IMG/VR virus record: IMGVR_UViG_3300044701_003953
Coordinates: 1 to 64,000 of that record
Strand: one strand, 5' to 3'
DNA length: 64,000 nt
Below, one piece after another: positions 10,582 to 48,928 of the stretch. Numbering within the stretch: position 1 is the stretch's first letter; each line of letters begins with the position of its first letter. The position numbers and the translations under genes were made by a program. A model generated the notes under the pieces. That model searched no databases, was not told the origin of the DNA, and saw only the letters and a list, made by a program, of their open reading frames with translations.

Positions 10582-11976
10582 TTATTTTTGGAGCCCAGAT
10601 AACCATTTTAGCATAGCCAGATCTGGATCTACGCTTTCAGTTGGTTGCGCAGGAACTGGTTGCTGTTCTGGTTGCTCAGGAGGTTCGAGTGCCGGAGTCA
10701 CTTGCTGTGCCACTTCGGGCATGTTCTGCTCGAGCCAATTTTGGACTACGGGGCGGGCGTCAGTTTCGGGATCCTCTTCGGCCATGGATTCTAGTTCATC
10801 AAACAAGTCATCATCCCCGATGATGTCGTAGAGTGCGCTGGTAGCGTCTGCGGCATCGGCGCCCAACAACAAGGGCTTGGTCATAAGTTCTTTGAGCTTG
10901 TTGATCTTTTCGGCATCGTCGGGTTGTGCCCAGGTGCCTTCGACCATGTCATCGGCCCAGGATTCGAACTCGCGTCCCATGGGTGTGTTTTGGCTGTCGA
11001 GGTATTGGCTGTAGGCACGGCGCACATAGGGCAAGGCTTCTTCCAGTCGCTCGTCAAATACACGGCGGGTGAGTCGATCTTTGATCTCGTCTTCGCCGAT
11101 GCCGCCAGCGTCACCGCTGCTGTCAACGCCTGAGCCGGCCCAGTAGAATCCATAGCCGCGGGGACCACGCATGCTCTTGAGACCTTTACGGACGTTCTGA
11201 TAACGGCGCTTGGCTGCTTCGATCATGACAGGTGTTATATCATCTTCGAATACTTGGTTGCGTGTGGCCGAAACGAATGTGCGTAGCGCGGCCATTTCTT
11301 TTACCAAGTCAATGATATGACCAGCACGCTCGTCCAGCATGTTGCCACCCTGGGCGATGTGCTGACCGATGGCTCTGGCACCTGTGAGGTTAGTGAAAGG
11401 CAATTTGAAACGTTCGCCTTCGGCGGTCTCTACATAGATGCTTTCGATGTTGCGTGTGCGGCAGCCGCGTTTTTCTTCATCCACTGGAGTGCTATGGCGC
11501 ACGATGATACGGGTCTCGCCCATACGGTCATAACTGATACGGCGGGTTCCATACATACGGCTTTCTCCAATGGTGACTTCGTCTGATGTGTAAGCAGAGT
11601 CACTCTTGCTCTGCTGTTTGATATCTCTGATATCCAATGATTTTTTAGTGATGTCGCGTGTGTCAAAATCCATCATGTTGCGCTTGGCGAACATTCGGAT
11701 GCCGCGCAGGAAGTCGAACCAGCCTTGCGTGTCCTCCTCGGGCATGCCGTCGGTGATGTTTTTGCTGTAATAGACTTTGATAGAGTTTTCGTCGATGAGG
11801 CTGATTGTGATATTGCCAAGATTTTCGCCACTCTGTGTAGAGTATTGGAAATTGATGAATCTCGCGTTTTCGGGATCCTGGGTGGCTTTGGCATTTTCGT
11901 CGCCAATGGTCACACCTTCAAACCTCGAGCGGATCTTTTCAAACAGGGCCTCGGCAATTTTATCTAATTCACGCAT
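10582..11976 (-). CDS. Hypothetical head-region protein (464 aa)
   Basis: Long ORF after terminase; TAAATA-N7-ATG; C-terminal LSGL motif. Confidence 0.75.
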   Translation of the reverse strand: MRELDKIAEALFEKIRSRFEGVTIGDENAKATQDPENARFINFQYSTQSGENLGNITISLIDENSIKVYYSKNITDGMPEEDTQGWFDFLRGIRMFAKRNMMDFDTRDITKKSLDIRDIKQQSKSDSAYTSDEVTIGESRMYGTRRISYDRMGETRIIVRHSTPVDEEKRGCRTRNIESIYVETAEGERFKLPFTNLTGARAIGQHIAQGGNMLDERAGHIIDLVKEMAALRTFVSATRNQVFEDDITPVMIEAAKRRYQNVRKGLKSMRGPRGYGFYWAGSGVDSSGDAGGIGEDEIKDRLTRRVFDERLEEALPYVRRAYSQYLDSQNTPMGREFESWADDMVEGTWAQPDDAEKINKLKELMTKPLLLGADAADATSALYDIIGDDDLFDELESMAEEDPETDARPVVQNWLEQNMPEVAQQVTPALEPPEQPEQQPVPAQPTESVDPDLAMLKWLSGLQK

Positions 11977-11989
11977 AGTAGTGTATTTA

Positions 11990-13558
11990 TCAACTCATCA
12001 TTATAAAGGGCATGGGCTCGATGTAGTCATCTAGGCTATCGCGCATTTTTTCATCTAAGTTAGCATCAAATCCCTGTAGCAGTTGTATCATGCGTAGGGC
12101 TAATACTAAGGCCATAACCAAGTCATCGGTTTCCCCGGGCTTGGCCGCAAAGCTCATACCGTGTGCTACAAATCCTTTGAGCTCAGTAATCAAGTTCTTG
12201 CTAGTGAGTGTGATACGTTTGTTTTCTATCAGAGTTTTGAGTTTAGCGCAAGCAGTAAGTTTGGGCTTGTGAGTGGTGTTGAATCCTTTGCGGAAGCGTC
12301 GCACATTTCCGCTTCGCCCGGGCTCGCTAAGGAAAGTGCCTCGTATGTTTTCCTCGCCTACTTCGGCGATGCTGACCAGTCCTGCCTCGCCTAAAGTATT
12401 GTTTTCCAGGCTGTAGTAGATGTCGTTTTCGCTGCCGGTGATACTATAAATGTAGTCGGCAATCTCTCGTAGTATAGCGATCTGTCGCTGGATCACTGTC
12501 TTGTTGTGTTTCCATTCAGCTACCTGTATCATGGACGGGATTTCTACTACTTGGATAGCGGCGTTGTCGCCTCCGGTGCCTAGGCTGGGATCCAGTGCTA
12601 TCACATATTGCTGGCCAGGCTCGGGTCGTTTATACCAGCGCACCTGTCCTTGTTTCTCCAGTGGATCACGCCCTTCCAGTTCCATGAGATGTATAGCCGA
12701 GATCAATGTCTCGTCGTAGATCACCGGTTCGCATTCGTGCTCTCGTTTGAAACGCTCTTCACCAATACTGGAACGCTCTTGGTTGGCCCATACTTCGTCG
12801 CGATCGGGATGACGGTTCCATTTAGCCATGTAGCCTTTGAAACCGTTCTCGCCCAACTCGCGCTGGTTACCGTATTCGTCCTCAGTCCTGTTAGCGGCAC
12901 GCCATAACATCCAGAACTGATCCTCGTCGGAGTTGGGGGTAGAAGTGATTATCGCTTTACCACCAGTAGCCAGCGTCGGTGATATAGAAGTCCAGAACTC
13001 TTTGGCGATAGAGTTTCGCACGAACGCGAACTCGTCAGCGTACAGGAGCGTGATGGACATACCCCGGCCTGTTGTTTCTGTGGTAGTGGCAGAAACTATG
13101 CGGCTACCATTTTCAAAGTCTATGCTGCCTTTGTTATAACTTACCACACCCGCACGGATGAAGTCAGGACACAACTCATAGGCATATCTGATACGTTGCA
13201 TGATCTCCTGGGCACCAGTGTATTTGTGCGCGGCGATCAGGATAGTAGAGTCGGGACGGAACATGGCATACCATAACAGATATCCTGCGGCTGTGGTGGT
13301 CTTACCCATCTGTCGTCCCAGCAGGTTGATACTGAATCGATGATTGTGATAGACGTCGATCAGTTCGTCTTGATAGTCAAAAGGCTGATACAGCATGCGG
13401 CCTTTGACAGGATGCTGTATGTAGAAATAGTTACCCAGGAAGTATTTAGGGCCCGTGGCGGGATCGGCACACCGAGCGAACTCGACGATCTGTTCATTGG
13501 TATATTTTTCTTTGCGGTGTGCGGGTTTGACCAGCACGCCTTCGAGACTCTTGGACAT
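11990..13558 (-). CDS. gp17: Terminase large subunit (gp17)
   Basis: GRQMGKTT Walker A, LLYADEFAF Walker B, ITSTPN, ALDPSLG nuclease motif, DDLVMA. Confidence 0.95.
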   Translation of the reverse strand: MSKSLEGVLVKPAHRKEKYTNEQIVEFARCADPATGPKYFLGNYFYIQHPVKGRMLYQPFDYQDELIDVYHNHRFSINLLGRQMGKTTTAAGYLLWYAMFRPDSTILIAAHKYTGAQEIMQRIRYAYELCPDFIRAGVVSYNKGSIDFENGSRIVSATTTETTGRGMSITLLYADEFAFVRNSIAKEFWTSISPTLATGGKAIITSTPNSDEDQFWMLWRAANRTEDEYGNQRELGENGFKGYMAKWNRHPDRDEVWANQERSSIGEERFKREHECEPVIYDETLISAIHLMELEGRDPLEKQGQVRWYKRPEPGQQYVIALDPSLGTGGDNAAIQVVEIPSMIQVAEWKHNKTVIQRQIAILREIADYIYSITGSENDIYYSLENNTLGEAGLVSIAEVGEENIRGTFLSEPGRSGNVRRFRKGFNTTHKPKLTACAKLKTLIENKRITLTSKNLITELKGFVAHGMSFAAKPGETDDLVMALVLALRMIQLLQGFDANLDEKMRDSLDDYIEPMPFIMMS

Positions 13559-13573
13559 GCTAGTATTTAAGGA

Positions 13574-13792
13574 TTATTTCTTGCCGAAGGGATTTTCGCC
13601 CGTGAGTTTGGGGCGAGCGAACCAAAGTTTAAACCAGTCATCGGTGCCGGGCTGTATCTTGTGCTTTTTCATGTGCGCAACTTTTTCGGCCGCGGTATGT
13701 GTGATGTTCCCACTGACAGAATGGTCAACGGTGTCTTTAGGATAGACACCGCGACCAACTCCTGCTAGATGTTTAAGTTCTTCTAAAGTCAT
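13574..13792 (-). CDS. Hypothetical protein (72 aa)
   Basis: Operon-coupled; N-terminal LKHLAGV motif. Confidence 0.7.
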   Translation of the reverse strand: MTLEELKHLAGVGRGVYPKDTVDHSVSGNITHTAAEKVAHMKKHKIQPGTDDWFKLWFARPKLTGENPFGKK

Positions 13793-13796
13793 GCAA

Positions 13797-15167
13797 TTAC
13801 TTGCTCAACTTGATGCTTTGGTATTCTTTCATGAGGTCACGACCTAGTTTGGCGACAGGATCATTGTCTTCAAACTGTGTGGTACGCATGGGGTTGTCGC
13901 CTTGCCAGTTAGGGTTAGCACCTTTGCTCTTATGTAGGTCATCGCCAGAAGTCACGACAGCGTCAACACCAGCTGTTTCTTCATCGGGAGTGTTTGCGTA
14001 TTCGATATCACGCTCTTCCTCGACTTCAGTTTCGTGCTCGGGGTGAGCAGCGACGATCGCGACTTGTGGCTCTTTGGCAGGAGCATCGCCCATGAGTCCG
14101 CTGAGCTTCAGCATCTGTGCTAGTTCTACGGCTGAATCACCTTGTGCTGTGATAGTGATGCTCTTGTTGCCATCGGCAGAGTTGTAGTTTGTGCTGACGT
14201 TGATCTCAGGTTTACCGGAGTCGCCAGTCGCACTCATTGGGCTCATCGAGCCACAGCTCTCACGCAAGCCAGCTAATTTAGCTAGTTCATCTAACTCCAT
14301 GGCAGATGGTTGTGCGGAGTCAGGAACGACTACTGTAGTAGTTGTTTCTTCGAGATTGAGTTCAGCGACTAATTTTTCTGTGACCCACTCGTAAGGATCA
14401 CCGCTACGAGCTTTGGCTGTGCCGTAAGGCATCTCGCCCGAACTCAGGTAGTAGTCATAGAGAGCATCATAGAGGTTGTCCTCGAGATCGCCACCTTGCT
14501 CGAAGGTTTTGACTTCAGCTGGGAAACGATCCAGGATGTGTTGTAATGTGTTGCCGTCTTCGTCGATGAGGCGTGCTTCGCTCATGTTCAGCAAGCGGCT
14601 CTTGAGGCTAGGACCTTTGGCACCCATCTTACGACCTGTGCCCTTTGGACGACCGCGGCCACGCTTCTCGCCAGTATCAGCAGGTTTGGCTTTACGACCT
14701 GGTTTGAGGTTGCCCCATTCGTCGTAAGCATCATCATCTTCTTCTTCACGGTCGCCACGGTAACCATATTTCTTATGGATGTTGCGATCGCTTTCAGCGT
14801 CGTGTTGCATCTTGACACCGCCCTTGGCGATGGCTTTCAGCAGGTTGGGGTCAAGACCCTCGACTTTGTATTTCTTACCATCTACTTCAAATTCTTCTTC
14901 GCCGGCAGCTTTGGCTTTGGCCAGTGCGCCCGAGAACTCGTTGCCTTCTTCCATCTCTTCGCACTGGCAGGGCTCGCTGTCGCATACCGGGCAGACTTCG
15001 CCTTCGGCCACGGTTTCTTTGAACTCGCGCAATTGAGCTTCGAGTCTAGCGGCGATGCCTTCCTTGATGCTACCTTTGGCCTCTACGGGCTCGTGGGTTT
15101 CTTTTACTTCTTCTTGTTTAGGTTCTAGGCTGTTCAGCGTAGAGAGGATGGAGTAGATGCTTGTCAC
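13797..15167 (-). CDS. Acidic hypothetical head-region protein with AT-hook-like motif
   Basis: KRGRGRPKG; two LAGL/LSGL motifs. Confidence 0.7.
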   Translation of the reverse strand: MTSIYSILSTLNSLEPKQEEVKETHEPVEAKGSIKEGIAARLEAQLREFKETVAEGEVCPVCDSEPCQCEEMEEGNEFSGALAKAKAAGEEEFEVDGKKYKVEGLDPNLLKAIAKGGVKMQHDAESDRNIHKKYGYRGDREEEDDDAYDEWGNLKPGRKAKPADTGEKRGRGRPKGTGRKMGAKGPSLKSRLLNMSEARLIDEDGNTLQHILDRFPAEVKTFEQGGDLEDNLYDALYDYYLSSGEMPYGTAKARSGDPYEWVTEKLVAELNLEETTTTVVVPDSAQPSAMELDELAKLAGLRESCGSMSPMSATGDSGKPEINVSTNYNSADGNKSITITAQGDSAVELAQMLKLSGLMGDAPAKEPQVAIVAAHPEHETEVEEERDIEYANTPDEETAGVDAVVTSGDDLHKSKGANPNWQGDNPMRTTQFEDNDPVAKLGRDLMKEYQSIKLSK

Positions 15168-15178
15168 TTTAGTGTTCC

Positions 15179-15760
15179 TTATCTTGCGGCGCTCTTGGGT
15201 TCAGGCTTGGCTACTTTGGTAGAGCCAACTGGACTCTCCGTGCCTTGGGGGATTTCGTTTGTGGTCTTACCGTCGGCTTTCTCCTTGCCGTCGATATCGT
15301 ATTTTCTTGTTTCTAATTCTTTGAAGAATGAAGTTAGGCGTTTCTCACCTACCAACTCTTGACCGGACTCCGAACTCATTTCTTCTTGCTCCAGGACAGC
15401 TTCTTTGCTTTCTTCAGAAACATTGAGTTCTTCTTGCTCCATCTGCGATTTCGTATAAACGCAAACATTCTCGCCAGCGATCTGAGCACGTTGGATGATC
15501 AATTGACGGATCTGCTCAGTGATAGTTGGGTAGCGCACAGCCACATCAAATTGGTAGACTTCTACTGGACCTGCTCTAGAAAAGTCTCTGTGTTCTTGGA
15601 TGGGCAGGCGTTTGACCTTGCCGATGGTTTCGACTTCGTATGTGTTGAGAGCGTTCTTGATGCGCTCCATCACTTCGCCTTTAGGGTCGATCCCTGCGAG
15701 TTTGACGCGAAACTCAAACAGTTTACCTGCTTCAAAAAAGTATGCTTGGAAATTTTTCAT
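15179..15760 (-). CDS. Hypothetical protein (193 aa)
   Basis: TAAATA at 15780-15785 upstream; N-terminus MKNFQAYFFE. Confidence 0.7.
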   Translation of the reverse strand: MKNFQAYFFEAGKLFEFRVKLAGIDPKGEVMERIKNALNTYEVETIGKVKRLPIQEHRDFSRAGPVEVYQFDVAVRYPTITEQIRQLIIQRAQIAGENVCVYTKSQMEQEELNVSEESKEAVLEQEEMSSESGQELVGEKRLTSFFKELETRKYDIDGKEKADGKTTNEIPQGTESPVGSTKVAKPEPKSAAR

Positions 15761-15782
15761 GTCCGTATCCTATTATCTATAT

Positions 15783-16277
15783 TTATTCAGATCTGCCTTT
15801 TTCTTGCTTGGCAGAATCCAGGATTTGTTTCAATAACTCGGAACGGTCTAGGACTACCCCGTGTCCTTCGATGGCCCCATCCTCTGGGCTTTCTTTGCTC
15901 ATCTGGTGATCCAGACGAGCCTTGCTTAATTGTAGTTGTATCATCTTGAGCTTTTTGTCCATCTTAGCAGTCTTGGCGGTTATAGCATGTCCTAATAGCG
16001 TAGATGCTGTTTGTAATATCACGCCCGAGTAACGTGGCTCTACGTTCATGCCCAGATCCATGAGATCTTTGAACTTTTCTTCTGCCAGATCTGCTAAGTC
16101 GTCCATCTCTTTGTCAGCGGCTTCTAACTCGCGGACCATTGGAAGAGCGGCATCGATCTTATCGATAGCAGTATCTACTTCTCTGATGACGTCTTTCTGA
16201 TGAGTTATTTCGGTCGAAACAGACTCGGTCTCGTCCGACGGGGACAGATTTAGTAGTTCCTCTAATTTTTTAGTCAT
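15783..16277 (-). CDS. Helical hypothetical protein (possible terminase small subunit)
   Basis: Start trimmed to MTKKLEELL (TAAATA-N5-ATG). Small-terminase role is inferred from size and position only. Confidence 0.55.
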   Translation of the reverse strand: MTKKLEELLNLSPSDETESVSTEITHQKDVIREVDTAIDKIDAALPMVRELEAADKEMDDLADLAEEKFKDLMDLGMNVEPRYSGVILQTASTLLGHAITAKTAKMDKKLKMIQLQLSKARLDHQMSKESPEDGAIEGHGVVLDRSELLKQILDSAKQEKGRSE

Positions 16278-16313
16278 AAAACTATTTAACCCAACGCAAA
16301 AGGGCGCCCCCAA

Positions 16314-16341
16314 AAAGAAAGGACCTTGCGGTCCTTTCTTT
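16314..16341 (-). terminator. Rho-independent terminator after dctP
   Basis: aaagaaaggacc-ttgc-ggtcctttcttt, 12-bp stem with GCAA loop on the minus strand. Confidence 0.8.
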
Positions 16342-16359
16342 CTATAGTTTTTAAAACTA

Positions 16360-17307
16360 TTAGGCTTTACGGATGGCGTCAACCAAGCCAGCTGTGAAGT
16401 AGTCTTCGTACTTGACGTAAACTTCTTTTGTAGCTTCTTGGAATTTGGCTTTTTCTTCAGCTGTCAGTGTGACAACTTCGATACCGTCTTTGGCAGCACG
16501 CTCTTGTGTAGCGGCTACGTCAGCGATCGAAATCTCACGCTCGTGACGGGCAGCAACGATAGCGGCGTCAGCAACAACCTTCTGGAGGTCTTCGCTGAGG
16601 CTGTTCCAGAACTGCTCACCGACTAGGATCGATGTCAGGAACAAGCTGTGCTCTGTGTGGTTGATGACTTTAGAAACAGCGTTCTGGCCTAAAGCGTAAA
16701 CACGTGGGTATGTGGACTCGCCGATTGTTACATCAGCTTGTGCCAGACCTTCTGTCAGCTCTTCTAGTTCCATAGGAACTACGTTGGCGCCAACAGCTTT
16801 GAATGTGTCGATAGCAACGGGAGAGAACGATGTGCGGACTTTCATGCCACGTAGATCTTCGATCTGGCTAACTGCTTCGTTACCTGGGATGATACGGAAA
16901 CCACCCGAGTATGTGAAAGCAAGACCCTTGATCTTCTTCTCTGTGGAAAGGCTGTTTAACAGGCTCTTACCAACTTCACCTTCGAACACGCGGCTGGCGT
17001 GATCGTGGCTTTGGAACAGGAAGGGCAAGTCCAGGGCGAAGAAGTCTTTGTTGACTTTGCCCAGTGTGATTGTGTATGTCTGGCTCATTTCGATTGCACC
17101 GCTGTCCAGCAGGTCGACTAGGTCGTGCTTGCTAACAGCTTTGCCGCCGTTGTATTTCTCAGCATACTCAGAAAGTGTTAAAACTTCGATATCCAATGCG
17201 CCTGCGGCTTTTGCTTCTACTTCAGCAGCAAAAACTTTGGCAGCACGGATGAAAAGCTCGATAGGCTCGTGCGCTAGAACCCAACGGATTTTCTTTGCTT
17301 GTGTCAT
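16360..17307 (-). CDS. dctP: TRAP transporter substrate-binding protein DctP-like, lacking a signal peptide
   Basis: LDLPFLF, YSGGFR, DLRGMKVRT, ESTYPR, TEHSLF motifs of the DctP family. Confidence 0.85.
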   Translation of the reverse strand: MTQAKKIRWVLAHEPIELFIRAAKVFAAEVEAKAAGALDIEVLTLSEYAEKYNGGKAVSKHDLVDLLDSGAIEMSQTYTITLGKVNKDFFALDLPFLFQSHDHASRVFEGEVGKSLLNSLSTEKKIKGLAFTYSGGFRIIPGNEAVSQIEDLRGMKVRTSFSPVAIDTFKAVGANVVPMELEELTEGLAQADVTIGESTYPRVYALGQNAVSKVINHTEHSLFLTSILVGEQFWNSLSEDLQKVVADAAIVAARHEREISIADVAATQERAAKDGIEVVTLTAEEKAKFQEATKEVYVKYEDYFTAGLVDAIRKA

Positions 17308-19354: not shown

Positions 19355-19386
19355 AGAAAAAATCCTTGCTCCTAGTATTTATGGCC

Positions 19387-35725: not shown

Positions 35726-35737
35726 GTTCTTGCTCAA

Positions 35738-41339: not shown

Positions 41340-44300
41340 TATGCTGATGCTCCTATACTGATTGAGTTGACATAGTCATTGGTAGCCAACTGTATGCGAA
41401 CCAAGCACACATTTCCTGTGGCTTTGGAAAGATTTTCGCCGCCCAATGTCAGAGTATAACTTCCGTTGATGGCTGTGCCAGTAGGGATTCGGTCTGACGA
41501 TGTTACCGCACAACCATTGCTTCCGTTGCCACCAGTAGCGGTGTTGGCGCCAGGAACACCTGAACCAGCATAGTTAGTCGATGAATCTAACCAACCATTG
41601 AGAGTTGATGTAGTATCAACATCTGTGCCGGGTGCAGCTATCCACAACCCCGATATCTTGCCATTGATAGCGATGTCAAAGTTGGCTACCAATGTTCTGC
41701 GGAAGGCAAATGTGAAATATTGGTATCCTGTTCTTCCGGTGGCTAAATCGGGTCCAGCAGGAAGATAATTTGTAAAGTCTGTAGTGACATTTTTGATCGC
41801 TCCCCATCGAACAACAGCTTCGTTGGTTCCGTCTACCGTAGTAGCTCCTGTGAATACTTGGGTAGTATAATAATTTGTCGCAGAATTAAATGCCGGGGTA
41901 GCGTCTAAAGGTCCGCCGGTGTTTGAAATCACCACTCGTTTACCATTGTCGCTATAAGTACCACCTAAGTTAGATGACACAGGGATAGATTCTTCGTTGA
42001 TACCCGATATCGTCGACGAGTAGACGTTGATAGGTACAGTCACCTGTTTGGTAGTGCCAGATCCATTGACGTTGGTAGCCGTGACATTGAGATAACCAAC
42101 TGAGGCAGCGGTTCCGTCGATGTTGACGTCAATACCACCTAAAGCATATATTGATCCGTTGCCAGTGTTGGCATTGGGAATACCTGATGTCAAGAAACTA
42201 GTTGATCCATCAACGTCAGTATAGGATTTTGATTGTGGTGAGATCAATGATCCTGTGGTGCTTTCAAGGTTGGCGCCATCAGAAACAGTCACAGGGTTTC
42301 CATTGAAATAAGTCTGTCCGATCCAATCTGTGATAGTCACCCCACTGATCGTAACAGCACCACCGGTATTGTAATAAGGTACACCCGATATGTAACGATA
42401 TGTGCCGCTGGTTTTTTCAGTGATAGTAGCCGATGAAGTATCTAAGGTAGGTACCGCTATGAGATCGTCTCGTACAAATCCAGTTGAATTAGTATTTCCA
42501 GATACCGTGTGAGTAAGTTGGAGAGTGCTGTAGCCTACTGGCAAGTCGGAGATAAATTTTGATATGCGTGCATCAAAGACCTTGTAGAATCCTGTGGGGT
42601 AAACACTATCAGATATAGCAAGGTGTGCATCTCTGTCATCGACTACCACTAGGCTGTTATAGGTTCCCGACTTGTTAGATGCTGTGTCAAATATCACTGA
42701 GCCATCATCGGTGCCATTAACACTAGCAACTAATGTTCCTGCTATCGATGTGTTGGCATCAGTAATAGTCGACGACGAAATAGTTCCCGAAACATATCTG
42801 GTCACTGTCGTACCAGCCGATGGCATAGCGCCGCCGGAGTTATTCGTGGCATCATAGGCCAATCTTGGACTGGTGCCTTGGCTGGATGTGCTCATTGACA
42901 GAGTCTTTGACGAAAGATTTCCGGGGGCAACTGGGTTAGCTGCTATGGTTAACGTGCGACTCTCTGTGTCTGTTTGTGCAATGGTCCCGGGCATGCCAGC
43001 CACTGCTAATGTAACTGTCTTGGTGCCAGTAGTGGTGTAAGAATGCGATATCGACCCGCCAGTGGCCGTTCCTGCATCGCCTTCGTTGATTGTGCCCGAT
43101 GTGTTGCCGTCTCCCCAAGACCACTCATAGGTATCAGCATTTTGGCTAGTGGTTGAGAAATTAAACTTTGATCTATCGTTATTGTTGTAATCGGTATAGG
43201 CATAGCCCACCGAACTGCTGTCACCTAATCGGTCACTGACTATGTCGGCGGTCAATGTAAAATTTGATCTTACATCAGGTTCTACAGTGATCACTGTGGG
43301 CAACGAAGTAAATGGGCTGAGACTGTGGCCGTTTACTACGTCAAGAGTCACGCTGTAAGTTTTAGTAACCCCGGCTGCCTGATCGGACGCTGAGAGAGCA
43401 AATGTATGCGATATCGGAGAACCGGGATTTCCTGCGATACCTGGACCAACATCAATGGTGTTGTCGGTGCTATCGTCCCAAATCCAACGATATCTATTTG
43501 ATAGAAAAATAGACGTATTGCCGGGGGCTGTATCAGTAGAGTTAGTGAAAGATACTACTCCGCCAGCGGTCGCTTCTTCGTTGACTACGCGGACGGTGTT
43601 GGCTGTGAAGCTTGGTGTGTGCTCGCTGTAGACATAGATTGGGTAAGGATCTGACTCTATAGTGACTGGGGAAGGGCCTGCTGTGTCGCTGGTCGCTAGC
43701 AGCACTAAATCATATTTGGTGTCACCGTTGGTGTTGCTGTAGATATGGGTGCGAGTATCAGTGCCTGACCCATCGTCTTCCCATACCGCACCTTTAGTAT
43801 TGGGATCGTAGACGATCTTACCGCTACCGTCGACTTGTATACCGCCGTTGAGTTTGGTTAGAGCCGTCGTTGTACCATCGCCCCAGACGATCTCATATGA
43901 GTTTGAATATTCACTGAAGTTAGTGATCGCTAATCCGGTCACATCATCGGTGTCAATGACGTCACTGATCAACGACAACGAAGGCACGGGGTTTGGTGTG
44001 TACAGAGTGATGTAGTCTGTCTTGATCTCTTGATCAACCGATCCACGAGCACCAGCCGATAAGTCACCATTTAGTGTGCCTGCGGAGTTGTATGCTCGTA
44101 ATGTGACTGTGTACTGTTCGCCTTCCTCGTTGTTGTACGTGTGACTCACAACCGATCCGGCAGTTATCACTGTACCATCACCGAAGTCCCAATAATAATT
44201 TGTGGGATTGCCTGTGACAGTGCTTGTGAATTCTACTGTCATCGGGCTAGGACCAGCAACAACATTGGCTGAAAAATTGGCTTCGCCAACATAAGTGCCT

Positions 44301-44800
44301 TTGGCAATATTGAGTGCTACTTGATTGAGATCATCAATAGCGTCTGTGACATAAACATCAGGCGTCCAGCTGTCCCAGGAAGCATGTTCATTTAATGAGC
44401 TGTCGGTAGGAGTTCCAAGTATTACTGTCATTCCAGTAGTGCCAGTGGCCTGTGCCAAGCTACCAATGTCACTCCACCTCAATGTACCGTTGCCATCTGT
44501 GGTCAACACATAGTTAGATGTCCCACCCGAAATAGTGATATCTGTAACAGCACCAAGATCTAATAGACCACTCAATGAAGATATCGACGATCCTGAAATT
44601 AAAACATCTCCAACCCTGGCTTCGCCATTAACATCAAGGTCGTATGCTGGACTATTAGTTTTTATACCAACGCGGCCGTCTTGACTATTTTGATTATTGT
44701 TGACATCGAGGTAGATGAGGTTGCCTTCGAAGCGCAGGTCGACCCCTTGGCGCTCCAAGTTTTCATATAGCATCGCACCTGATATTCTACCTATTGCCAT
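41339..44800 (-). CDS. Large Ser/Thr-rich virion protein with PKD domains (1153 aa)
   Basis: NYYWDFGDG, YEWSWGDG, IVWGDG PKD signatures. Confidence 0.75.
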   Translation of the reverse strand: MAIGRISGAMLYENLERQGVDLRFEGNLIYLDVNNNQNSQDGRVGIKTNSPAYDLDVNGEARVGDVLISGSSISSLSGLLDLGAVTDITISGGTSNYVLTTDGNGTLRWSDIGSLAQATGTTGMTVILGTPTDSSLNEHASWDSWTPDVYVTDAIDDLNQVALNIAKGTYVGEANFSANVVAGPSPMTVEFTSTVTGNPTNYYWDFGDGTVITAGSVVSHTYNNEEGEQYTVTLRAYNSAGTLNGDLSAGARGSVDQEIKTDYITLYTPNPVPSLSLISDVIDTDDVTGLAITNFSEYSNSYEIVWGDGTTTALTKLNGGIQVDGSGKIVYDPNTKGAVWEDDGSGTDTRTHIYSNTNGDTKYDLVLLATSDTAGPSPVTIESDPYPIYVYSEHTPSFTANTVRVVNEEATAGGVVSFTNSTDTAPGNTSIFLSNRYRWIWDDSTDNTIDVGPGIAGNPGSPISHTFALSASDQAAGVTKTYSVTLDVVNGHSLSPFTSLPTVITVEPDVRSNFTLTADIVSDRLGDSSSVGYAYTDYNNNDRSKFNFSTTSQNADTYEWSWGDGNTSGTINEGDAGTATGGSISHSYTTTGTKTVTLAVAGMPGTIAQTDTESRTLTIAANPVAPGNLSSKTLSMSTSSQGTSPRLAYDATNNSGGAMPSAGTTVTRYVSGTISSSTITDANTSIAGTLVASVNGTDDGSVIFDTASNKSGTYNSLVVVDDRDAHLAISDSVYPTGFYKVFDARISKFISDLPVGYSTLQLTHTVSGNTNSTGFVRDDLIAVPTLDTSSATITEKTSGTYRYISGVPYYNTGGAVTISGVTITDWIGQTYFNGNPVTVSDGANLESTTGSLISPQSKSYTDVDGSTSFLTSGIPNANTGNGSIYALGGIDVNIDGTAASVGYLNVTATNVNGSGTTKQVTVPINVYSSTISGINEESIPVSSNLGGTYSDNGKRVVISNTGGPLDATPAFNSATNYYTTQVFTGATTVDGTNEAVVRWGAIKNVTTDFTNYLPAGPDLATGRTGYQYFTFAFRRTLVANFDIAINGKISGLWIAAPGTDVDTTSTLNGWLDSSTNYAGSGVPGANTATGGNGSNGCAVTSSDRIPTGTAINGSYTLTLGGENLSKATGNVCLVRIQLATNDYVNSISIGASA

Positions 44801-44810
44801 GTTTTATCCT

Positions 44811-45251
44811 TTACAAAGCGTCGGTCTTGACGTCGGTGCTGTTGAAATTGTAAATGATAACGATCTTGTTGGGACTGTTTGGTAAGTCAGGAGCCGGTGG
44901 AGGGCTAGTGAACACTATTTCTGGACCAGATATTGTATAGTTTACACCAGGCTGTTGATATACACCGCCAATGAATACCATGACGTCTGTGGCATTAGCT
45001 ACAGCATTGGTCATGGTAAAATTAGTAGAGGTATTGTTGCCAATTTCTTCTTGTGTTTCTATCATGACATTGCCCACTGATGCAATATCTTTCCAATCAT
45101 TATTATAAACGTATTGTACTCTGTTAGTAGATGTGTTGAATCTAATCATTCCATCTATTAGATTAGAAGGTTCAGGACCTGATGTACCAGCCAGTGGTAA
45201 TCGAAATGCATAACCAACTGAGGTACTTGAATTTTTTAAATAACGTCCCAT
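44811..45251 (-). CDS. Virion structural protein
   Basis: GMIRFNTSTN and VFIGGVYQQP..YTISG modules shared with the fibres. Confidence 0.65.
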   Translation of the reverse strand: MGRYLKNSSTSVGYAFRLPLAGTSGPEPSNLIDGMIRFNTSTNRVQYVYNNDWKDIASVGNVMIETQEEIGNNTSTNFTMTNAVANATDVMVFIGGVYQQPGVNYTISGPEIVFTSPPPAPDLPNSPNKIVIIYNFNSTDVKTDAL

Positions 45252-45273
45252 TTAAATTCTGCTCTTTTATATT

Positions 45274-45585
45274 TTACAATGTGGTATAACTTACTGTGGC
45301 GACGACAACATCATCTGCGGATGCTGATCCATAAACGGTGTCTCCATTATCTAGCAAAAGTTTTTCAGTATCTAAAATATAGGTATCACCGGGTTCAATC
45401 GATAGCGCACCATAAAATTTATTACCGTCCGATGGAGAATCTCCCGACGGAACCGCATAGAGATCGATGGTTCTCATAGTAGAGTCGCCATTGTAGAGAT
45501 ATATCACTGTGACTGCTCGTTCGCCGACAGTGTTGCTGATGATTGGCGCCGGCGTTGAAGTCAAGGTAGTGTTTGCAATTGACAT
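45274..45585 (-). CDS. Small virion structural protein (beta-rich)
   Basis: Operon position; beta-strand composition. Confidence 0.6.
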   Translation of the reverse strand: MSIANTTLTSTPAPIISNTVGERAVTVIYLYNGDSTMRTIDLYAVPSGDSPSDGNKFYGALSIEPGDTYILDTEKLLLDNGDTVYGSASADDVVVATVSYTTL

Positions 45586-45594
45586 GAGTTGTTC

Positions 45595-46140
45595 CTAAAA
45601 AATCAATGCGTAAATAAACGCTTTACGTTTGGTCACTAACTCTTTTTCAATAGAAGAATCGTTAGTGACAAATATTCCTGTGCCGCCACCGGCAACGGTA
45701 TTAAATTTAATTTCAACATTGGCATCTGTGTCTTTGATAGTGTTACCAGCTAATGACAGATTGCCACCTAATTCTGGCTGTAGATCTTCTACTACAGCCG
45801 TCAGTCCTGCCCCTGACGAAGAAGAAACCGAAGTAAGAATATATCTTGCTGTCCCATCTCCGTTGTTAAGTATCCAAGCATCATCGGACTCACGAAACTT
45901 AAGATATGCTGTTGTCAGTGTTCCGCGATCAACTTCAATTCCCGACGTGCTGTCACCACCCAATACGCCAGCTTGCATAGTATCGTCATCCAGTTTATTC
46001 AATGTGATTATTCTATCATTGACTGTGGATTCAATAGATTGTAATTTGGTTTCTGTGCCAGTGACTATGAGATTCCCTTGAAGTTCAATCGTAGGAGATT
46101 TGATGGTGTAATAATCGCTGACTATTTTTTTAGCTGGCAT
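45595..46140 (-). CDS. Virion structural protein
   Basis: DRIITLNK, SGIEVDRG, LTAVVEDLQPELGGNL modules; TAAATA at 46168-46173. Confidence 0.65.
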   Translation of the reverse strand: MPAKKIVSDYYTIKSPTIELQGNLIVTGTETKLQSIESTVNDRIITLNKLDDDTMQAGVLGGDSTSGIEVDRGTLTTAYLKFRESDDAWILNNGDGTARYILTSVSSSSGAGLTAVVEDLQPELGGNLSLAGNTIKDTDANVEIKFNTVAGGGTGIFVTNDSSIEKELVTKRKAFIYALIF

Positions 46141-46206
46141 ACTCTGTTATCCAAGGTAATTTCCTAGTATTTATGCTCATAGATACATTGTACAAACTGT
46201 TCGACT

Positions 46207-46557
46207 TTATGGAGATACTATGCCAACTACATCGTCATGAGCATTTTTGGCTCCGACTACCCACCGATATCGTTCTCCAGTGGATTTCCAGACAAAGTCG
46301 TCGGTGATTTTGATCACATTAAATTTTCCATGGTTAACATGAGTAGCTGTGATGGTCATTTGGCCTGGGCCCGAAAGTTTATCTACTAGCTTGCATCTGC
46401 TAGTTCCTTCGTCAGTTTTAACTAAAAACACTCTTTCGCCAAGTTGGCTTAGTATATCGCCAACCATGCCTCTTGATCCGCCGATCACCCAGGCGTCCGA
46501 CGAAATCATGTCTTGATTTCCTTGAAAATATTTTGTATCTAAGCTAGGTCTTCCCAT
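46207..46557 (-). CDS. Hypothetical protein after major capsid (116 aa)
   Basis: Start trimmed to MGRPSLDTKYF; TATAAATA 7 nt upstream. Confidence 0.6.
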   Translation of the reverse strand: MGRPSLDTKYFQGNQDMISSDAWVIGGSRGMVGDILSQLGERVFLVKTDEGTSRCKLVDKLSGPGQMTITATHVNHGKFNVIKITDDFVWKSTGERYRWVVGAKNAHDDVVGIVSP

Positions 46558-46578
46558 AGTGTAGTATTTATAGTCAAC

Positions 46579-46603
46579 AAAAAAGGGCCTTGCGGCCCTT
46601 TTT
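46579..46603 (-). terminator. Terminator after major capsid gene
   Basis: aaaaagggcc-ttgc-ggcccttttt. Confidence 0.85.
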
Positions 46604-46638
46604 GTCCTTCCCATCCCTGGGTTGGTCTGATTCTCTGA

Positions 46639-47805
46639 TTAGGAGAACGACAGATTTTGGATAGCAACTTTACCGAGGTAGTCGGCAGCGTTACCTAACG
46701 AAGAAGCTGTGTTTGTCAGCTCAACGTAGCCATAACGTGTCATGAAGCCTACGACTGGCTCGAATGTTGCTGGGTCAAGAACGACACCAGAAGACATTAG
46801 AGGAACATATGGGCAGTAGAACGCAGCGGCGTCAGCTTCGCTAGAACCTTTGTAGCCAACGAGAACGTCAGCATCATCGGCAGCATAGCTGTCAACGTAA
46901 ATGCGCATTGCACCGTTCAATGTACCAACGAACTTGGTGTTTGTTGGAGCTTCGAATGTGCCTTCTGTTGTACGAGCAAAAGCAGAAGTTGTGGCAGACT
47001 GTAGAACAGTCAGAGCAGCTGGGGAAACAACGGCCCAGTTACCAGCACCACGACGTGTGCGTTGAGCGATACGGTTAGCAACGCGGTTGATCAGAACTGC
47101 TAGAGCAGCGTGCTGGTCACCAACGAATGTAGCTTGACCGGAAACACCAGTTTGGTCGAATGTTTCTTGTGCTGTACCGGCTAAGCTACGCAGAGAACCG
47201 AGAACTTCTTGATCGATTTCAACTGTGATTTCTTGTGCCAGAGCAGCCATGATTTCTGCTTCAACGTCCAGGCCATGCATGGCTTGTGCGTCTTGAGCAG
47301 CTTCAAATGTCCAACGAGCAGACAGTTTACGAGTTTTAGCCTCGACAACTTGCTTCAGGATTTGGACGTTGATCTTACGACCAGGTGCGCCTTCCAGGCT
47401 AGCTGTAGAAGAAGCCTTACCATTAGGATCTGTACCTGTACCAGAGTACGCAGTAGCGATCTTGAATGGGCTCAGTGCTTCGTCACCGGCTGTTACGTTG
47501 TCATTGCTGTCAGCGTAACGAACGCGGAGTGTGTGGATCTGAGCAACGGGGCCTGTCATTGGCTGAACACCAACGATTTCGTTAGCGATAACTGTTGGCA
47601 TTACTCGACGGATAACTGGAAGAATAACGCGGTTCAGTGTAGCTACGTTACCGGAAGCTGTTGCACCGGCTGTTGCATTTTCAGATAGATACTTCTTTGT
47701 GTTTTCAAGGATCACGCCCATTGTTGTGCGCTTGGAACCTTGGAGGCCTTCGAGCAGAGCTTCTTTGGTCTCGCCCCAGCGGCTCTCTAATAGTGCTTGT
47801 GTCAT
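46639..47805 (-). CDS. gp23: Major capsid protein (gp23)
   Basis: VIRRVMP..IANEIVGVQPMTGP, KTRKLSARWTFEAAQD, AAFYCPYVPL, FMTRYG. Confidence 0.96.
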   Translation of the reverse strand: MTQALLESRWGETKEALLEGLQGSKRTTMGVILENTKKYLSENATAGATASGNVATLNRVILPVIRRVMPTVIANEIVGVQPMTGPVAQIHTLRVRYADSNDNVTAGDEALSPFKIATAYSGTGTDPNGKASSTASLEGAPGRKINVQILKQVVEAKTRKLSARWTFEAAQDAQAMHGLDVEAEIMAALAQEITVEIDQEVLGSLRSLAGTAQETFDQTGVSGQATFVGDQHAALAVLINRVANRIAQRTRRGAGNWAVVSPAALTVLQSATTSAFARTTEGTFEAPTNTKFVGTLNGAMRIYVDSYAADDADVLVGYKGSSEADAAAFYCPYVPLMSSGVVLDPATFEPVVGFMTRYGYVELTNTASSLGNAADYLGKVAIQNLSFS

Positions 47806-47830
47806 TTTACCTTTTCTCCTTTAGGGTAAG

Positions 47831-48928
47831 TTATTTAAGCCCTGCTAGACGCTTGATTTCGATGACGTTACTGACATCAGCCTCAGCGGCGGTTTTAGCA
47901 GTTTTATCTCCTGTAACCTCTACTCGACTTTCAGCAACCATTTGCTTTTGGGCTTGTGGTTTGCTAGAAGCATTGAGTACAGCAGGTAGATACTTTTCAA
48001 ATGCGGACTGTAGCTTATCAGTCTGCACCGATTCTAGAAGCTCGCTCATTACAGCGGCTTTTTCCTTGTTGAGAGGCTTGAGCAGTTCGGCCATAGTGGC
48101 TTTGCGCTCTGATAGATCCTTGACAACACGGATTTCACGTTCTTTGGATTCCACGATCGCTTGTTTCTCTTCAGCCGCACGAACCGCTTCGGCTAACTGT
48201 TGATCTTTTTCTGCGACAGCTTCGCGTAGTTTAGCGATTTCTTTGTTCTCATTGAGATGAGTAACAGCAAATTCACCTGCGAAGGCTTCAAAGATTCTAC
48301 GACCAAACATGTTTTCACGTGCGATCGAGATGTCTTCTTTGAGCTGGGTCAGTTCAGACTCCAGATTCTTGGCAACACTCTCTTTGACCAGTTTGGAAGC
48401 CTTGGCCACGAAGTTTTGCTGGAGCTCGGCCATTTTGGCTTTTGCTTCGGCTACTAAGCGAACCTTGGTTTCTACCACTGCTTGTTTGTCTTGCTCAAAT
48501 TCCTGGATTTCCTCGGCAAGAGCCTTGATGACAAACTGTTCGAGTTTAGCGATGCTATTCTCGTAAGTCTTGCGATCACTGCGCAGCTCTTTGATTTCTT
48601 CAGCCAATTTAGTAACCATGAAGTCGTTGAACTTCTTGGAACTTTCTGTCATGTGAACTTTGTGGTTCACACGCTCTTCGGCTAGGGCTGCTTTTTCTGC
48701 TTGGAATTCTTGGATTTCAGCTTGGAGAGATTCTGTCACCATCTTGTCTAGAGCTTCAACCATTAATGCTTTATCGTGCTGATAGCGTTCCGCGAATTCT
48801 TCGCGTAATTCAGCGCGGACTTGCTCGCGAGCTTCCGTCAGCTTGGCTTCCCAGGCTTCAGAGATCGCTGTGCGAGTTTCCTCGTTGATGATGCCACTAT
48901 CTAGCAATGGTTTGATAGCATCTAACAT
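47831..48928 (-). CDS. gp22: Prohead core scaffolding protein (gp22-like)
   Basis: Glu/Lys/Ala coiled coil between the protease and capsid genes. Confidence 0.8.
   Translation of the reverse strand: MLDAIKPLLDSGIINEETRTAISEAWEAKLTEAREQVRAELREEFAERYQHDKALMVEALDKMVTESLQAEIQEFQAEKAALAEERVNHKVHMTESSKKFNDFMVTKLAEEIKELRSDRKTYENSIAKLEQFVIKALAEEIQEFEQDKQAVVETKVRLVAEAKAKMAELQQNFVAKASKLVKESVAKNLESELTQLKEDISIARENMFGRRIFEAFAGEFAVTHLNENKEIAKLREAVAEKDQQLAEAVRAAEEKQAIVESKEREIRVVKDLSERKATMAELLKPLNKEKAAVMSELLESVQTDKLQSAFEKYLPAVLNASSKPQAQKQMVAESRVEVTGDKTAKTAAEADVSNVIEIKRLAGLK

Follow-up and report, generated by a model that had tools for sequence, protein, structure and literature searches.

A scaffold-tail peptide recurs in unrelated protein families of a marine jumbo phage and is probably a reusable head-incorporation tag

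Introduction

Several viral and virus-like shells recruit internal proteins through short peptides. In phage T4, whose head is built with a gp21-type protease, a gp22-type scaffold, and a gp23-type coat, the internal proteins IPI-III and Alt are otherwise unrelated but share a short N-terminal capsid targeting sequence (CTS). The CTS directs proteins into the core of the prohead and can carry foreign proteins (PMC3012670). It is of the MKTYQEFIAE type and ends in the cleavage site. In P22-type systems, the scaffold C-terminus binds the coat through a helix-turn-helix of about 30 residues, and reviews describe its engineered fusion to foreign proteins, which loads them into procapsids. Encapsulins, which have an HK97-fold shell but no scaffold, protease, or DNA, load unrelated cargo enzymes through short, linker-tethered terminal peptides of the LxIGSLKG type, which bind the inside of the shell. 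In herpesvirus, lambda, and P2-type systems, nested in-frame genes give the protease and the scaffold one shared C-terminal tail, and a maturational cleavage upstream of this tail frees the scaffold. Finally, the jumbo phages phiKZ and SPN3US pack inner-body and ejection proteins with propeptides that are removed by a protease of S/A/G-x-E specificity.

We examined a 64,000-nucleotide window (positions 1 to 64,000 of IMG/VR virus record IMGVR_UViG_3300044701_003953) and the 207.5-kb contig to which it belongs. A sequence-only reading had proposed that a peptide of the form (E/D)xxxL(A/S)G(L/V) is shared by the scaffold C-terminus and three unknown proteins, and that it is a coat-binding tag that recruits accessory proteins into the prohead. 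The observation was confirmed, as all five peptides are present at the positions given in that reading. The interpretation was only partly supported: the motif is a real, conserved, and portable element placed as a loading tag would be, but binding to the interior of the gp23 coat remains an inference.

Motif-Bearing Genes and Their Context

All of the features considered are on the minus strand:

47831–48928 (−): gp22-like scaffolding protein gene (365 aa), between the gp21-like protease and the gp23-like major capsid protein (MCP)
47837–47866 (−): scaffold C-terminal motif VIEIKRLAGL (residues 355–364), followed by K and the stop codon
47903–47938 (−): conserved scaffold element upstream of the tail, VAE (family consensus L-x-E, a candidate gp21-type cleavage site) and then ..VTGDK (family consensus V-T-G-N/D-R/K)
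10582–11976 (−): 464-aa protein gene, immediately downstream of the terminase large subunit gene (TerL)
10591–10620 (−): C-terminal motif LAMLKWLSGL of the 464-aa protein (residues 453–462), followed by QK and the stop codon
13574–13792 (−): 72-aa protein gene, immediately upstream of TerL, encoding a conserved C-terminal QPGT.EWFKLWFARPKLTGENP domain
13757–13786 (−): N-terminal motif LEELKHLAGV of the 72-aa protein (residues 3–12)
13797–15167 (−): 456-aa modular protein gene with a GTG start
14628–14663 (−): AT-hook-like stretch RGRGRPKGTGRK in the 456-aa protein (residues 169–180), a possible DNA-binding element
14265–14294 (−): motif copy 1 of the 456-aa protein, LDELAKLAGL (residues 292–301)
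14094–14123 (−): motif copy 2 of the 456-aa protein, LAQMLKLSGL (residues 349–358)
11990–13558 (−): TerL, flanked by the motif-bearing genes
46639–47805 (−): gp23-like MCP, one candidate receptor for the motif
48938–49564 (−): gp21-like prohead protease, the candidate enzyme for the L-x-E site and an alternative receptor

The gene identities were supported by profile matches. The MCP matches Pfam Gp23 (9.6e-101) and has more than 8000 close homologs. The protease matches phrog_207 (head maturation protease; 3.5e-56), and its homologs are annotated as Peptidase_S77 or T4 gp21-like. TerL matches phrog_36964 (1e-131), and the portal also has a PHROG match. The scaffold matches phrog_10922 (2e-88), although the gp22 label rests on its position between the protease and the MCP and on the annotation of relatives as scaffolding protein in 121Q, MIJ3, and others. 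The 464-aa protein matches phrog_13484 ("virion structural protein"). The neighborhood of TerL is the same in PA5oct and Atu_ph07. In the 456-aa protein, short conserved modules are joined by disordered linkers, with an N-terminal IYSIL helix and a confident helical domain at residues 201–270. The AT-hook-like stretch was read directly from the sequence and has the RGRP core that defines AT-hooks.

The formula of the sequence-only reading is too loose, as two of the five sites lack the acidic residue at that position. A better consensus is acidic-h-x-x-h-x-[KR]-L-[AS]-G-[ILV], where h is hydrophobic. The bare tetrapeptide is not enriched at protein termini. A sixth site, LAGI in the 193-aa protein at 15179–15760, is probably due to chance because its PA5oct counterpart reads KIATD.

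Conservation and Enrichment of the Motif

For the scaffold, 799 family representatives were found at E<=1e-3. Among the 124 full-length representatives, 94 carry the motif in their last 16 residues, with tails of the form ..[RK][RK]LAG[IL]K. In a motif-selected alignment of 87 sequences, L361, A362, and G363 are conserved in 82, 85, and 87 sequences, respectively. Among motif-bearing tails, positions L, A, and G are at 93, 97, and 100%. The upstream element is also conserved in the same alignment: position 331 is L in 71 of 87 sequences (I in 9 and V in 4), E333 is found in 83, T339 in 77, and G340 in all 87. As T4 gp21 cleaves after L/I-x-E, we infer that this L-x-E, located 32 residues before the end of the scaffold, may be a cleavage site.

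For the 464-aa family, 24 of 31 complete IMG/VR homologs (31–94% identity, 421–781 aa) end in the same tail, although the preceding linker varies by hundreds of residues. The 72-aa family has 64 homologs in a word search and at least 585 loci in IMG/VR. In its alignment, L9 and G11 are invariant, whereas K7 and A10 are at 90% or more. The 456-aa family has at least 739 homologs, and all 119 examined carry one to four copies. Its family consensus sequences are EELNELAKLAGL for copy 1 and AEQLAQMLK[LM][AS]G[LM] for copy 2. The consensus sequences of the four unrelated families are nearly identical.

Whether the motif is more frequent than expected by chance had been named beforehand as a test of this idea. 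The pattern [LIVMF]..[LIVM]..L[AS]G[LIV] hits exactly the five sites among the 65,281 predicted residues of the contig, compared to 0.74 expected from shuffles (two of 300 shuffles reach five) and two hits in reversed sequences. However, this pattern was derived from these sites, such that the test is circular for the window. Conservation is stronger evidence than these pattern counts in the contig. In PA5oct, which provides an independent test, the same pattern has six hits compared to 0.84 expected, and none of 300 shuffles reach six. Scoring matrices trained only on scaffold tails, those of other phages in the case of the contig, gave seven hits at 12 bits or more in the contig (0.8–1.0 expected) and six at 14 bits or more in PA5oct (0.33 expected). 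Three further partial genomes gave four, three, and three hits at 13 bits or more (0.26, 0.17, and 0.20 expected, respectively). In total, enrichment over shuffled and reversed proteomes was found in six of the eight genomes tested and was weak or absent in RaK2 and CBB. In these enterobacterial members, the scaffold motif is degenerate (NAGI, LSGI), few other proteins carry it, and some hits, to an RNA ligase and a dCMP deaminase, are clearly due to chance.

The motif also occurs in distant cultured relatives, namely in PA5oct gp203 and gp235, CBB gp213, and two Atu_ph07 proteins. One of the latter has a NUDIX domain (Pfam 6e-11) preceded by MNIDKLKKLAGIKK, such that the motif is an N-terminal tag on a NUDIX hydrolase; the other is a 113-aa protein. 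In addition, four of five long contigs with a 72-aa-family gene also have a scaffold ending in LKKLAGLN, LRKLAGL, LKKLAGLTR, or LRKLAGIGK. However, members of one clade share features by descent, and this co-occurrence is weak evidence.

Predicted Structures and Virion Association

In structure models, the motif is a short helix, tethered by disordered linker in two of the three modeled copies. In the AlphaFold2 model of the 464-aa protein (pLDDT 74.9), residues 429–449 are disordered and residues 451–459 form a helix; a fold search with this protein gave no informative match. The model of the 456-aa protein has alternating confident modules and segments under pLDDT 50. The helix of copy 1 (residues 289–298) is isolated between segments under pLDDT 50 (277–288 and 302–318). 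In contrast, copy 2 is not free but is modeled as the helix of a small beta-beta-alpha module (residues 322–358), packed on a beta hairpin (strands 322–329 and 334–341, helix 344–355, pLDDT about 80). A complex prediction of the MCP with the scaffold tail returned no answer and thus counts neither way.

Relatives or architectural analogs of two of the three unknown proteins were detected in virions by mass spectrometry. For the 464-aa family, these are PA5oct gp206, CBB gp276, GAP32, and phAPEC6 gp205c, of which the first three are annotated as structural and the last was detected by MS. For the 456-aa type, these are PA5oct gp203 and CBB gp213, the latter annotated, like CBB gp276, as "virion structural protein". 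PA5oct gp203, gp206, and gp235 are all flagged ESI-MS/MS. Among the five non-scaffold PA5oct proteins scoring 13 bits or more, four are MS-positive, compared to 93 of 461 overall. However, this label is weak, because the PA5oct MS list also contains ribonucleotide reductase, thymidylate synthase, and similar enzymes. Moreover, PA5oct gp206 and CBB gp276 lack the C-terminal tail yet are found in virions, indicating that the tail is not required for incorporation of that family everywhere. The 72-aa family has no cultured member and no proteomic evidence, and elsewhere lies among non-structural genes. The PA5oct scaffold (gp153) was not detected in mature virions, as expected for a scaffold.

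A Proposed Prohead-Incorporation Signal

The peptide is a short linear motif of about 11 residues, an amphipathic helix ending in Gly plus a hydrophobic residue and often followed by Lys. It forms the extreme C-terminus of the gp22-like scaffold in a very large clade of jumbo phages with T4-type heads (RaK2/121Q/PA5oct/Atu_ph07 and many uncultured marine relatives). The same peptide is found on otherwise unrelated proteins of these phages: at the C-terminus of the 464-aa family, at the N-terminus of the 72-aa family, of PA5oct gp203, and of the Atu_ph07 NUDIX hydrolase, and in the linkers of the 456-aa family. It is probably a reusable tag that brings proteins into the assembling head, a reading that we hold with moderate confidence. 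We propose that all copies bind the same site in the assembling prohead as the scaffold tail does, which would be the inner face of the gp23 shell or the scaffold core itself. Tagged proteins would then be incorporated as internal head proteins, and the scaffold body would later be released by gp21-type cleavage at the L-x-E site. The receptor could equally be the core, as for the T4 CTS, or the portal or the protease. Our analysis establishes the motif, its conservation, its placement at termini or in linkers, its modeled helix, and the virion detection of relatives or analogs of two families, whereas binding, the identity of the receptor, packaging, and cleavage are inferred.

Other explanations are possible but appear unlikely. 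The motif may be a docking or recognition element of the gp21-like protease that marks substrates, as an exosite or a signal next to the cleavage site, without determining entry into the prohead. It is shared by the scaffold, the main protease substrate in T4-type heads, and by proteins likely to be inside the head. Moreover, a pattern h-x-[ED] often directly precedes the core (hydrophobic at −8 and E/D/Q at −6), and the near-invariant L-x-E lies upstream in the scaffold tail. However, position −6 is not conserved as Glu (E 29%, D 21%, and Q 16% in scaffolds; E/R in the 72-aa family), and a site two to four residues from a C-terminus or at the very N-terminus is an odd place for a cleavage signal. 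Substrates would still need a way into the prohead, and the only cleavage data for this clade are MCP size shifts. Alternatively, and also doubtful, the motif may dock onto the portal or terminase during packaging, a phage or host chaperone, or an AAA+ protease adaptor site, and so control timing, folding, or turnover and not encapsidation. Three motif-bearing genes flank TerL in the window, and the gene just upstream of TerL starts with the motif in the window, PA5oct, and Atu_ph07. PA5oct encodes ClpX, ClpA, ClpS, ClpP, and FtsH, and a C-terminal h-R-h-x-h-K tail loosely resembles ClpX-binding tails. In contrast, the 72-aa family is not next to TerL in other phages, 456-aa-type proteins are found in virions while TerL is not, and a putative separate small terminase, similar to PA5oct gp201, is present at 15783–16277. 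The scaffold also has its own dedicated protease, and its presence in hundreds of copies fits a shell or core receptor better than a 12-mer portal.

The least likely explanation is that there is no shared partner and that the motif is a generic helix C-cap (helix-Gly-hydrophobic) that arose independently and has only local structural roles. This would be consistent with the modeled mini-domain of copy 2 in the 456-aa protein, with the lack of terminal enrichment of the bare tetrapeptide, and with the internal LK.MSG of the 464-aa family (DLKRLSGV in PA5oct gp206), which is a conserved structural element. Motif-like hits inside a PA5oct AAA ATPase, a CBB RNA ligase, and a ParB-like protein are surely incidental. 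Nevertheless, the near-identical 11-residue consensus in four unrelated families, its preservation at extreme termini after hypervariable disordered linkers, the invariant L and G of the 72-aa family, the enrichment across genomes, and its appearance as an add-on to a NUDIX enzyme all argue against this explanation.

Comparison With Known Systems

Similar to phiKZ and SPN3US, in which jumbo-phage heads pack many internal proteins, the 121Q and phAPEC6 members of this clade have an inner body, whose proteins are unidentified (PMC7247149; PMC5646251). However, the phage lineage, protease specificity, and protein families all differ, and no short motif shared with the scaffold has been described for phiKZ or SPN3US. 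As in the herpesvirus, lambda, and P2-type pairs, more than one protein carries the same C-terminal tail and a candidate cleavage site lies upstream of it, although here the cleavage is only inferred, the motif is on independent and unrelated genes, and it can also be N-terminal. Encapsulin cargo-loading peptides are similar in placement and composition (hydrophobic-Gly-hydrophobic-basic), but the consensus differs and no homology is implied.

The T4 CTS likewise is a short terminal peptide on otherwise unrelated proteins in a head of the same type, but its sequence is unrelated and it is N-terminal only. It is not known to be shared with gp22, and T4 gp22 is not known to end in the motif found here. 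In contrast, the tag in the phage examined here is N-terminal, C-terminal, or internal, and is identical to the tail of the scaffold itself. The P22 gp8-type domain is also the extreme C-terminal end of the scaffold and is helical with basic residues, but the two lack sequence similarity, and here a single helix of about 11 residues follows a flexible linker, with coat binding only inferred. In P22 the reuse of the scaffold end on cargo is man-made, whereas here it appears to be natural.

Head module and verification of the motif

The window, which covers the first 64 kb of a 207.5-kb viral contig, carries a T4-type head module on the minus strand. The identical proteins also occur on a 339,769-bp contig. 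The components of this module are as follows.

50732-52444 (-), portal
48938-49564 (-), gp21-like protease
47831-48928 (-), coiled-coil protein of 365 aa in the gp22 position
46639-47805 (-), gp23-family major capsid protein (MCP; Pfam Gp23, 1e-100)

The nearest cultured relatives are jumbo phages of the RaK2/121Q/PBECO4/CBB/GAP32, PA5oct, Atu_ph07, and SCTP-2 groups, and the 365-aa protein is the counterpart of what those records call the scaffolding protein. The MCP is unusually uniform. At least 8000 candidates were found in a word search at E<=1e-20 and the 120 listed are 84–96% identical, whereas the scaffold representatives are only 31–62% identical to the query.

The sequence-only reading had reported a shared peptide at five sites, and this observation holds. 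All five peptides are present at the positions that it gave: the scaffold ends in ..VIEIKRLAGLK-stop, the 464-aa protein (P0002) ends in ..LAMLKWLSGLQK-stop, the 72-aa protein (P0003) starts with MTLEELKHLAGV, and the 456-aa protein (P0004) contains LDELAKLAGL and LAQMLKLSGL. A 10-residue pattern written from these sites finds exactly these five in the 221 predicted proteins of the contig, compared with 0.74 in residue shuffles (2 of 300 shuffles reach five) and 2 in reversed sequences. Because this pattern was fitted to the sites, proteomes were also scored with matrices trained only on scaffold tails from other phages. The window contig has 7 sites at 12 bits or more (about 1 expected), PA5oct has 6 sites at 14 bits or more (0.33 expected), and three further partial relatives have 4, 3, and 3 sites at 13 bits or more (0.26, 0.17, and 0.20 expected, respectively). 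In the CBB and RaK2 proteomes, the enrichment is weak or absent. The gene calls for whole proteomes were based on a simple longest-ORF heuristic, and no alternative genetic code was needed. Shuffles do not preserve helical periodicity, but reversed sequences, which do, gave only 0–2 hits. The bare LAG[LIV] tetrapeptide is not enriched at protein termini, and the signal lies in the extended helix-plus-cap motif.

Some instances were judged to be incidental or structural. These include the LAGI in the 193-aa protein at 15179-15760, the internal DLKRLSGV of PA5oct gp206 (a family-wide structural element), and the hits in the PA5oct gp335 AAA ATPase, the CBB RNA ligase and dCMP deaminase, and a ParB-like 354-aa protein at positions 190017-191081 of the contig. 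Outside the window, a 224-aa protein at contig positions 175610-176284 (-) ends in ..GEKEINDIKLAAGLPVESQAPKNEYTESLRIAAGIR, which is two copies of an L/I-A-A-G variant of the motif, one of them at the extreme C-terminus. This gene lies two genes from a lysozyme-like gene and may encode a further tagged protein.

Conservation of the motif in four protein families

Conservation provides stronger evidence than enrichment. For the scaffold, an exhaustive profile-free search found 799 representatives at E<=1e-3. Among the 124 full-length sequences in the best 150, 94 have the motif in the last 16 residues and several more have near variants. The consensus is [ED]-I-x-[ED]-[LI]-[RK]-[RK]-L-A-G-[IL]-K-end. 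The motif is also present in eight of eight named phages, although it is more degenerate in the enterobacterial ones (CBB ..SRNAGISKNR and 121Q ..DVLSGINKK). For the 464-aa family, 24 of 31 complete homologs in IMG/VR (31–94% identity, 421–781 aa) end in EQLKHLAGLK, IAQMRRIAGLK, LLDIRRLAGLS, and the like, and the stretch before the motif varies by hundreds of residues. This conservation rescues the weakest instance of the sequence-only reading, which scores only 4.6 bits on the scaffold matrix.

The 72-aa family has 64 homologs in the word search and at least 585 loci in IMG/VR. Its N-terminus reads M-x-[LI]-E-x-L-K-x-L-A-G-[IV], with L and G invariant, and is followed by a variable linker and a conserved Trp-rich domain. 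In the 456-aa family, all 119 listed homologs have one to four copies, with the consensus sequences EELNELAKLAGL and AEQLAQMLK[LM][AS]G[LM]. That search was word-seeded, such that some selection for the motif is possible. However, E-values of 1e-35 and better rest on several other modules. The four consensus sequences are nearly superimposable. Members of one clade are not independent observations.

Some members of the 456-aa family (including homologs P0091, P0143, P0153, and P0105) carry a DUF3008 module (Pfam up to 1.5e-17), which in P0105 directly follows a motif copy (..EMMRLSGMQLNEKAVSKQQQKFMGMVHAMQKGEK). The family looks like a shuffled set of short conserved modules on disordered linkers. 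A literature search for DUF3008 returned no papers.

Predicted structure of motif-bearing proteins

The AlphaFold2 model of the 464-aa protein (pLDDT 74.9) has a disordered Pro/Gln/Glu-rich segment at residues 429–449, followed by a helix at residues 451–459 that corresponds to the motif. Fold searches with this protein were not informative. Foldseek found no match in the PDB at E<=0.001, a wide structural alignment search (VIA-align) gave a best Z of 6.9 on generic helices, and BFVD returned only uncharacterized phage proteins, including the Atu_ph07 863-aa protein downstream of TerL. The model of the 456-aa protein is a string of short confident modules separated by segments with pLDDT under 50. 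Motif copy 1 is modelled as an isolated helix at residues 289–298 between disordered stretches, whereas copy 2 is the helix of a small beta-beta-alpha module at residues 322–358. This protein also has a confident helical domain at residues 201–270 and an AT-hook-like RGRGRPKGTGRK.

In the scaffold family, the last 35 residues read L-x-E (L 71/87, E 83/87), then V-T-G-N/D-R/K (G 87/87), a variable linker, and the motif. The alignment of these 87 sequences was chosen from motif-bearing sequences. Because L-x-E is the specificity of T4 gp21, a cleavage after this site (residue 333 in the scaffold of the window) that would detach the scaffold body from its tail is inferred.

Genomic context and relatives

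The gene order of a P0004-type gene, a small protein starting with the motif, TerL, and a P0002-type gene recurs. In PA5oct, gp203 starts with MFNINDILRLAGV, also has LDEISKLAGIS, and precedes TerL (gp204). The P0002 homolog gp206 follows, with gp205 between it and TerL. In Atu_ph07, a 113-aa protein starting with MDIERLKILAGLE precedes TerL, and an 863-aa relative of P0002 follows it. CBB gp213 has the same modular make-up as P0004, namely LALAGQ, SSLAGI, GDNPL, and a C-terminal helix. However, tblastn searches of cultured phages with P0003 and P0004 found no match, and a profile comparison (hhalign) of the P0004 family with PA5oct gp203 and CBB gp213 gave E-values of 0.005–0.0065 at 6–7% probability. 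The links to these two proteins rest on shared short modules only, and they are referred to here as architectural analogs rather than proven homologs. PA5oct gp235 combines a P0004-like module, IDRIKKLAGIS, and a very basic tail. Atu_ph07 also encodes a NUDIX hydrolase (Pfam 6e-11) whose first 14 residues are MNIDKLKKLAGIKK, which is the clearest case of the motif as an apparent add-on to an enzyme. Among five long IMG/VR contigs that hold a 72-aa-family gene, four also hold a scaffold ending in the motif, and the fifth is a 26%-complete fragment.

In two close relatives of the window, extra genes of 284 aa (contig L010, 3906-4760) and 647 aa (contig L011, 7001-8944) are inserted between the P0004 and P0003 homologs. 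These genes are absent from the window, suggesting mobile insertions at this spot. In two marine contigs holding 72-aa-family genes (L084 and L086), many neighboring small proteins start with a second recurrent N-terminal pattern, M-[RK]-x-x-[EQ]-[FL] (MRAHQFISE, MRAYQFINE, MKIRELFEAD, MKLSELFAED, and MRAKEFLEG), which recalls the T4 capsid targeting sequence. P0002 and the 376-aa protein at window 3481-4611 start with MRELDKIAE and MRELLQIFE, respectively.

The possibility that P0004 or P0003 is the small terminase was considered and rejected. A separate 164-aa candidate lies two genes upstream, P0004-type proteins are in virions, and the 72-aa family is not linked to TerL elsewhere. This candidate and other genes near the packaging and head genes are as follows.

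15783-16277 (-), 164-aa helical protein that resembles PA5oct gp201 and possibly T4 gp16-type small terminases; it matches phrog_16202 (unknown function) and has no Pfam hit
16360-17307 (-), DctP-family TRAP-transporter solute-binding protein (Pfam 1.3e-50), among the packaging and structural genes just upstream of the candidate small terminase
56673-57923 (-), ammonium transporter (Pfam Ammonium_transp, 1e-100)
57898-58236 (-), P-II nitrogen regulator (Pfam P-II, 2e-31), overlapping the start of the ammonium transporter gene
4620-5393, 59455-60456, and 60526-61365 (-), sugar-nucleotide and envelope-type auxiliary genes: a cytidylyltransferase plus mannose-6-phosphate isomerase fusion, a group-1 glycosyltransferase, and a calcineurin-like phosphoesterase

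If the candidate small terminase is correct, TerS and TerL are separated by three genes, two of them motif-bearing. The ammonium transporter and P-II regulator form a nitrogen-uptake auxiliary gene pair beside the head module.

Virion association in cultured relatives

PA5oct gp203, gp206, and gp235 are flagged ESI-MS/MS. Among the five non-scaffold PA5oct proteins scoring 13 bits or more, four are MS-positive, compared with a background of 93 of 461. However, the PA5oct list also contains obvious metabolic enzymes, and virion MS does not separate head from tail. CBB gp213 and gp276 are annotated as virion structural proteins, and phAPEC6 gp205c was detected. The PA5oct scaffold gp153 was not detected in virions. 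Both 121Q and phAPEC6 show a bubblegram inner body whose proteins are unknown. The MCPs of 121Q and RaK2 run smaller than predicted, which is consistent with processing.

Interpretation of the motif and its significance

The best-supported reading is a portable short linear motif, which would be the terminal docking peptide of the scaffold, copied onto other proteins so that they enter the prohead with the scaffold. The sequence-only reading had proposed a reusable coat-binding tag that recruits accessory proteins into the prohead, and this interpretation is partly supported. The existence of the motif, its sharing among unrelated proteins, and its conservation are demonstrated by the sequence comparisons, and its helical form at termini or in linkers comes from structure models. 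By contrast, binding, the identity of the receptor, packaging of tagged proteins, and cleavage of the scaffold are inferred, and location in the head is supported only by the virion MS of relatives. For the receptor, the inner surface of the coat is considered about as likely as the scaffold core and other head components together. Some findings conflict with a simple tag model. P0002 homologs without the tail are still in virions, the 72-aa family lacks proteomic evidence, one copy is modelled as folded into a mini-domain, and the signal is weak in the enterobacterial subclade.

Alternatively, the motif may mediate docking to a non-capsid partner, such as the portal, the terminase, a chaperone, or a Clp-type machine. 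This is considered unlikely, although it is the least unlikely of the alternatives. A role as a protease recognition element is slightly less plausible, and a mere helix cap with no common partner is the most doubtful of the three.

A more far-reaching version of the tag hypothesis is tentative and, on present evidence, less likely than not. In this view, the motif would be a natural, modular capsid-loading tag identical to the scaffold's own shell-binding tail, and any protein that acquires it, at either end or in a linker, would be co-assembled into the prohead of this jumbo-phage clade. The cargo would include the putatively DNA-binding, linker-rich P0004-type proteins, which would build the so far unidentified inner body of 121Q/phAPEC6-type heads, as well as injected enzymes such as the Atu_ph07 NUDIX hydrolase. 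The scaffold would be released by gp21 cleavage at the conserved L-x-E. Such a system would be the phage counterpart of encapsulin cargo-loading peptides, evolved within a scaffold-dependent virus.

How large phage heads choose which proteins to enclose is known in detail only for T4 and, in part, for phiKZ-like phages, with nothing known for the RaK2/121Q/PA5oct clade and its very abundant marine relatives. If an 11-residue peptide shared with the scaffold is the entry ticket, the internal or ejected proteome of thousands of uncultured jumbo phages could be read from sequence. In addition, the peptide would give a concrete, testable handle in PA5oct or Atu_ph07 and offer a small natural tag for loading foreign proteins into large phage capsids. 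It would also show that the scaffold tail and cargo signals can be the same element, linking phage scaffolding to encapsulin-style cargo loading.

Comparison with known capsid-targeting systems

The motif would work like the T4 capsid targeting sequence, the P22 scaffold C-terminus, and encapsulin cargo-loading peptides, but it is not a member of any of these by sequence or by defining features. The T4 sequence is N-terminal and ends in an L/I-x-E cleavage site. The consensus of the motif is unrelated to it, copies occur at C-termini and internally, and position -6 is not a conserved Glu. Sharing by several unrelated proteins is shown, whereas their location inside the head, as for the T4 cargo, is supported only by virion MS of relatives, which does not separate head from tail.

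Like the coat-binding element of P22 gp8, the motif is conserved at the extreme C-terminus of the scaffolding protein. The P22 element is a helix-turn-helix of about 30 residues with a basic face. Here, only one short helix is modelled for the motif in P0002 and P0004, and basic residues at -4 and -3 are conserved. A complex prediction of the MCP with scaffold residues 321–365 scored 0.00 and 0.01 against a mark of 0.32, in a run without controls in which the scaffold tail had pLDDT under 50, and it is evidence neither for nor against coat binding. In protease-scaffold pairs of the herpesvirus/lambda type, a tail is shared through in-frame overlapping genes. The motif-bearing genes are instead separate ORFs up to 37 kb apart, and the protease (48938-49564) ends in ..VVRLINELKL, without the motif.

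Literature searches with motif strings returned only noise, and those on scaffolds, jumbo phages, and cargo found no description of this motif. The families involved are unnamed. As in encapsulin cargo loading, a short terminal peptide on a flexible linker is shared by unrelated proteins. Disordered linkers precede or flank the modelled helix, linker length is hypervariable in the 464-aa family, and a NUDIX enzyme carries the tag. However, an encapsulin shell has no portal, DNA, or scaffold, whereas this locus encodes a portal, protease, scaffold, gp23-type MCP, and terminase. Capsid-targeting peptides are already known, and the unusual feature of this motif is that the scaffold tail and the putative cargo tag are the same element, usable at either terminus.
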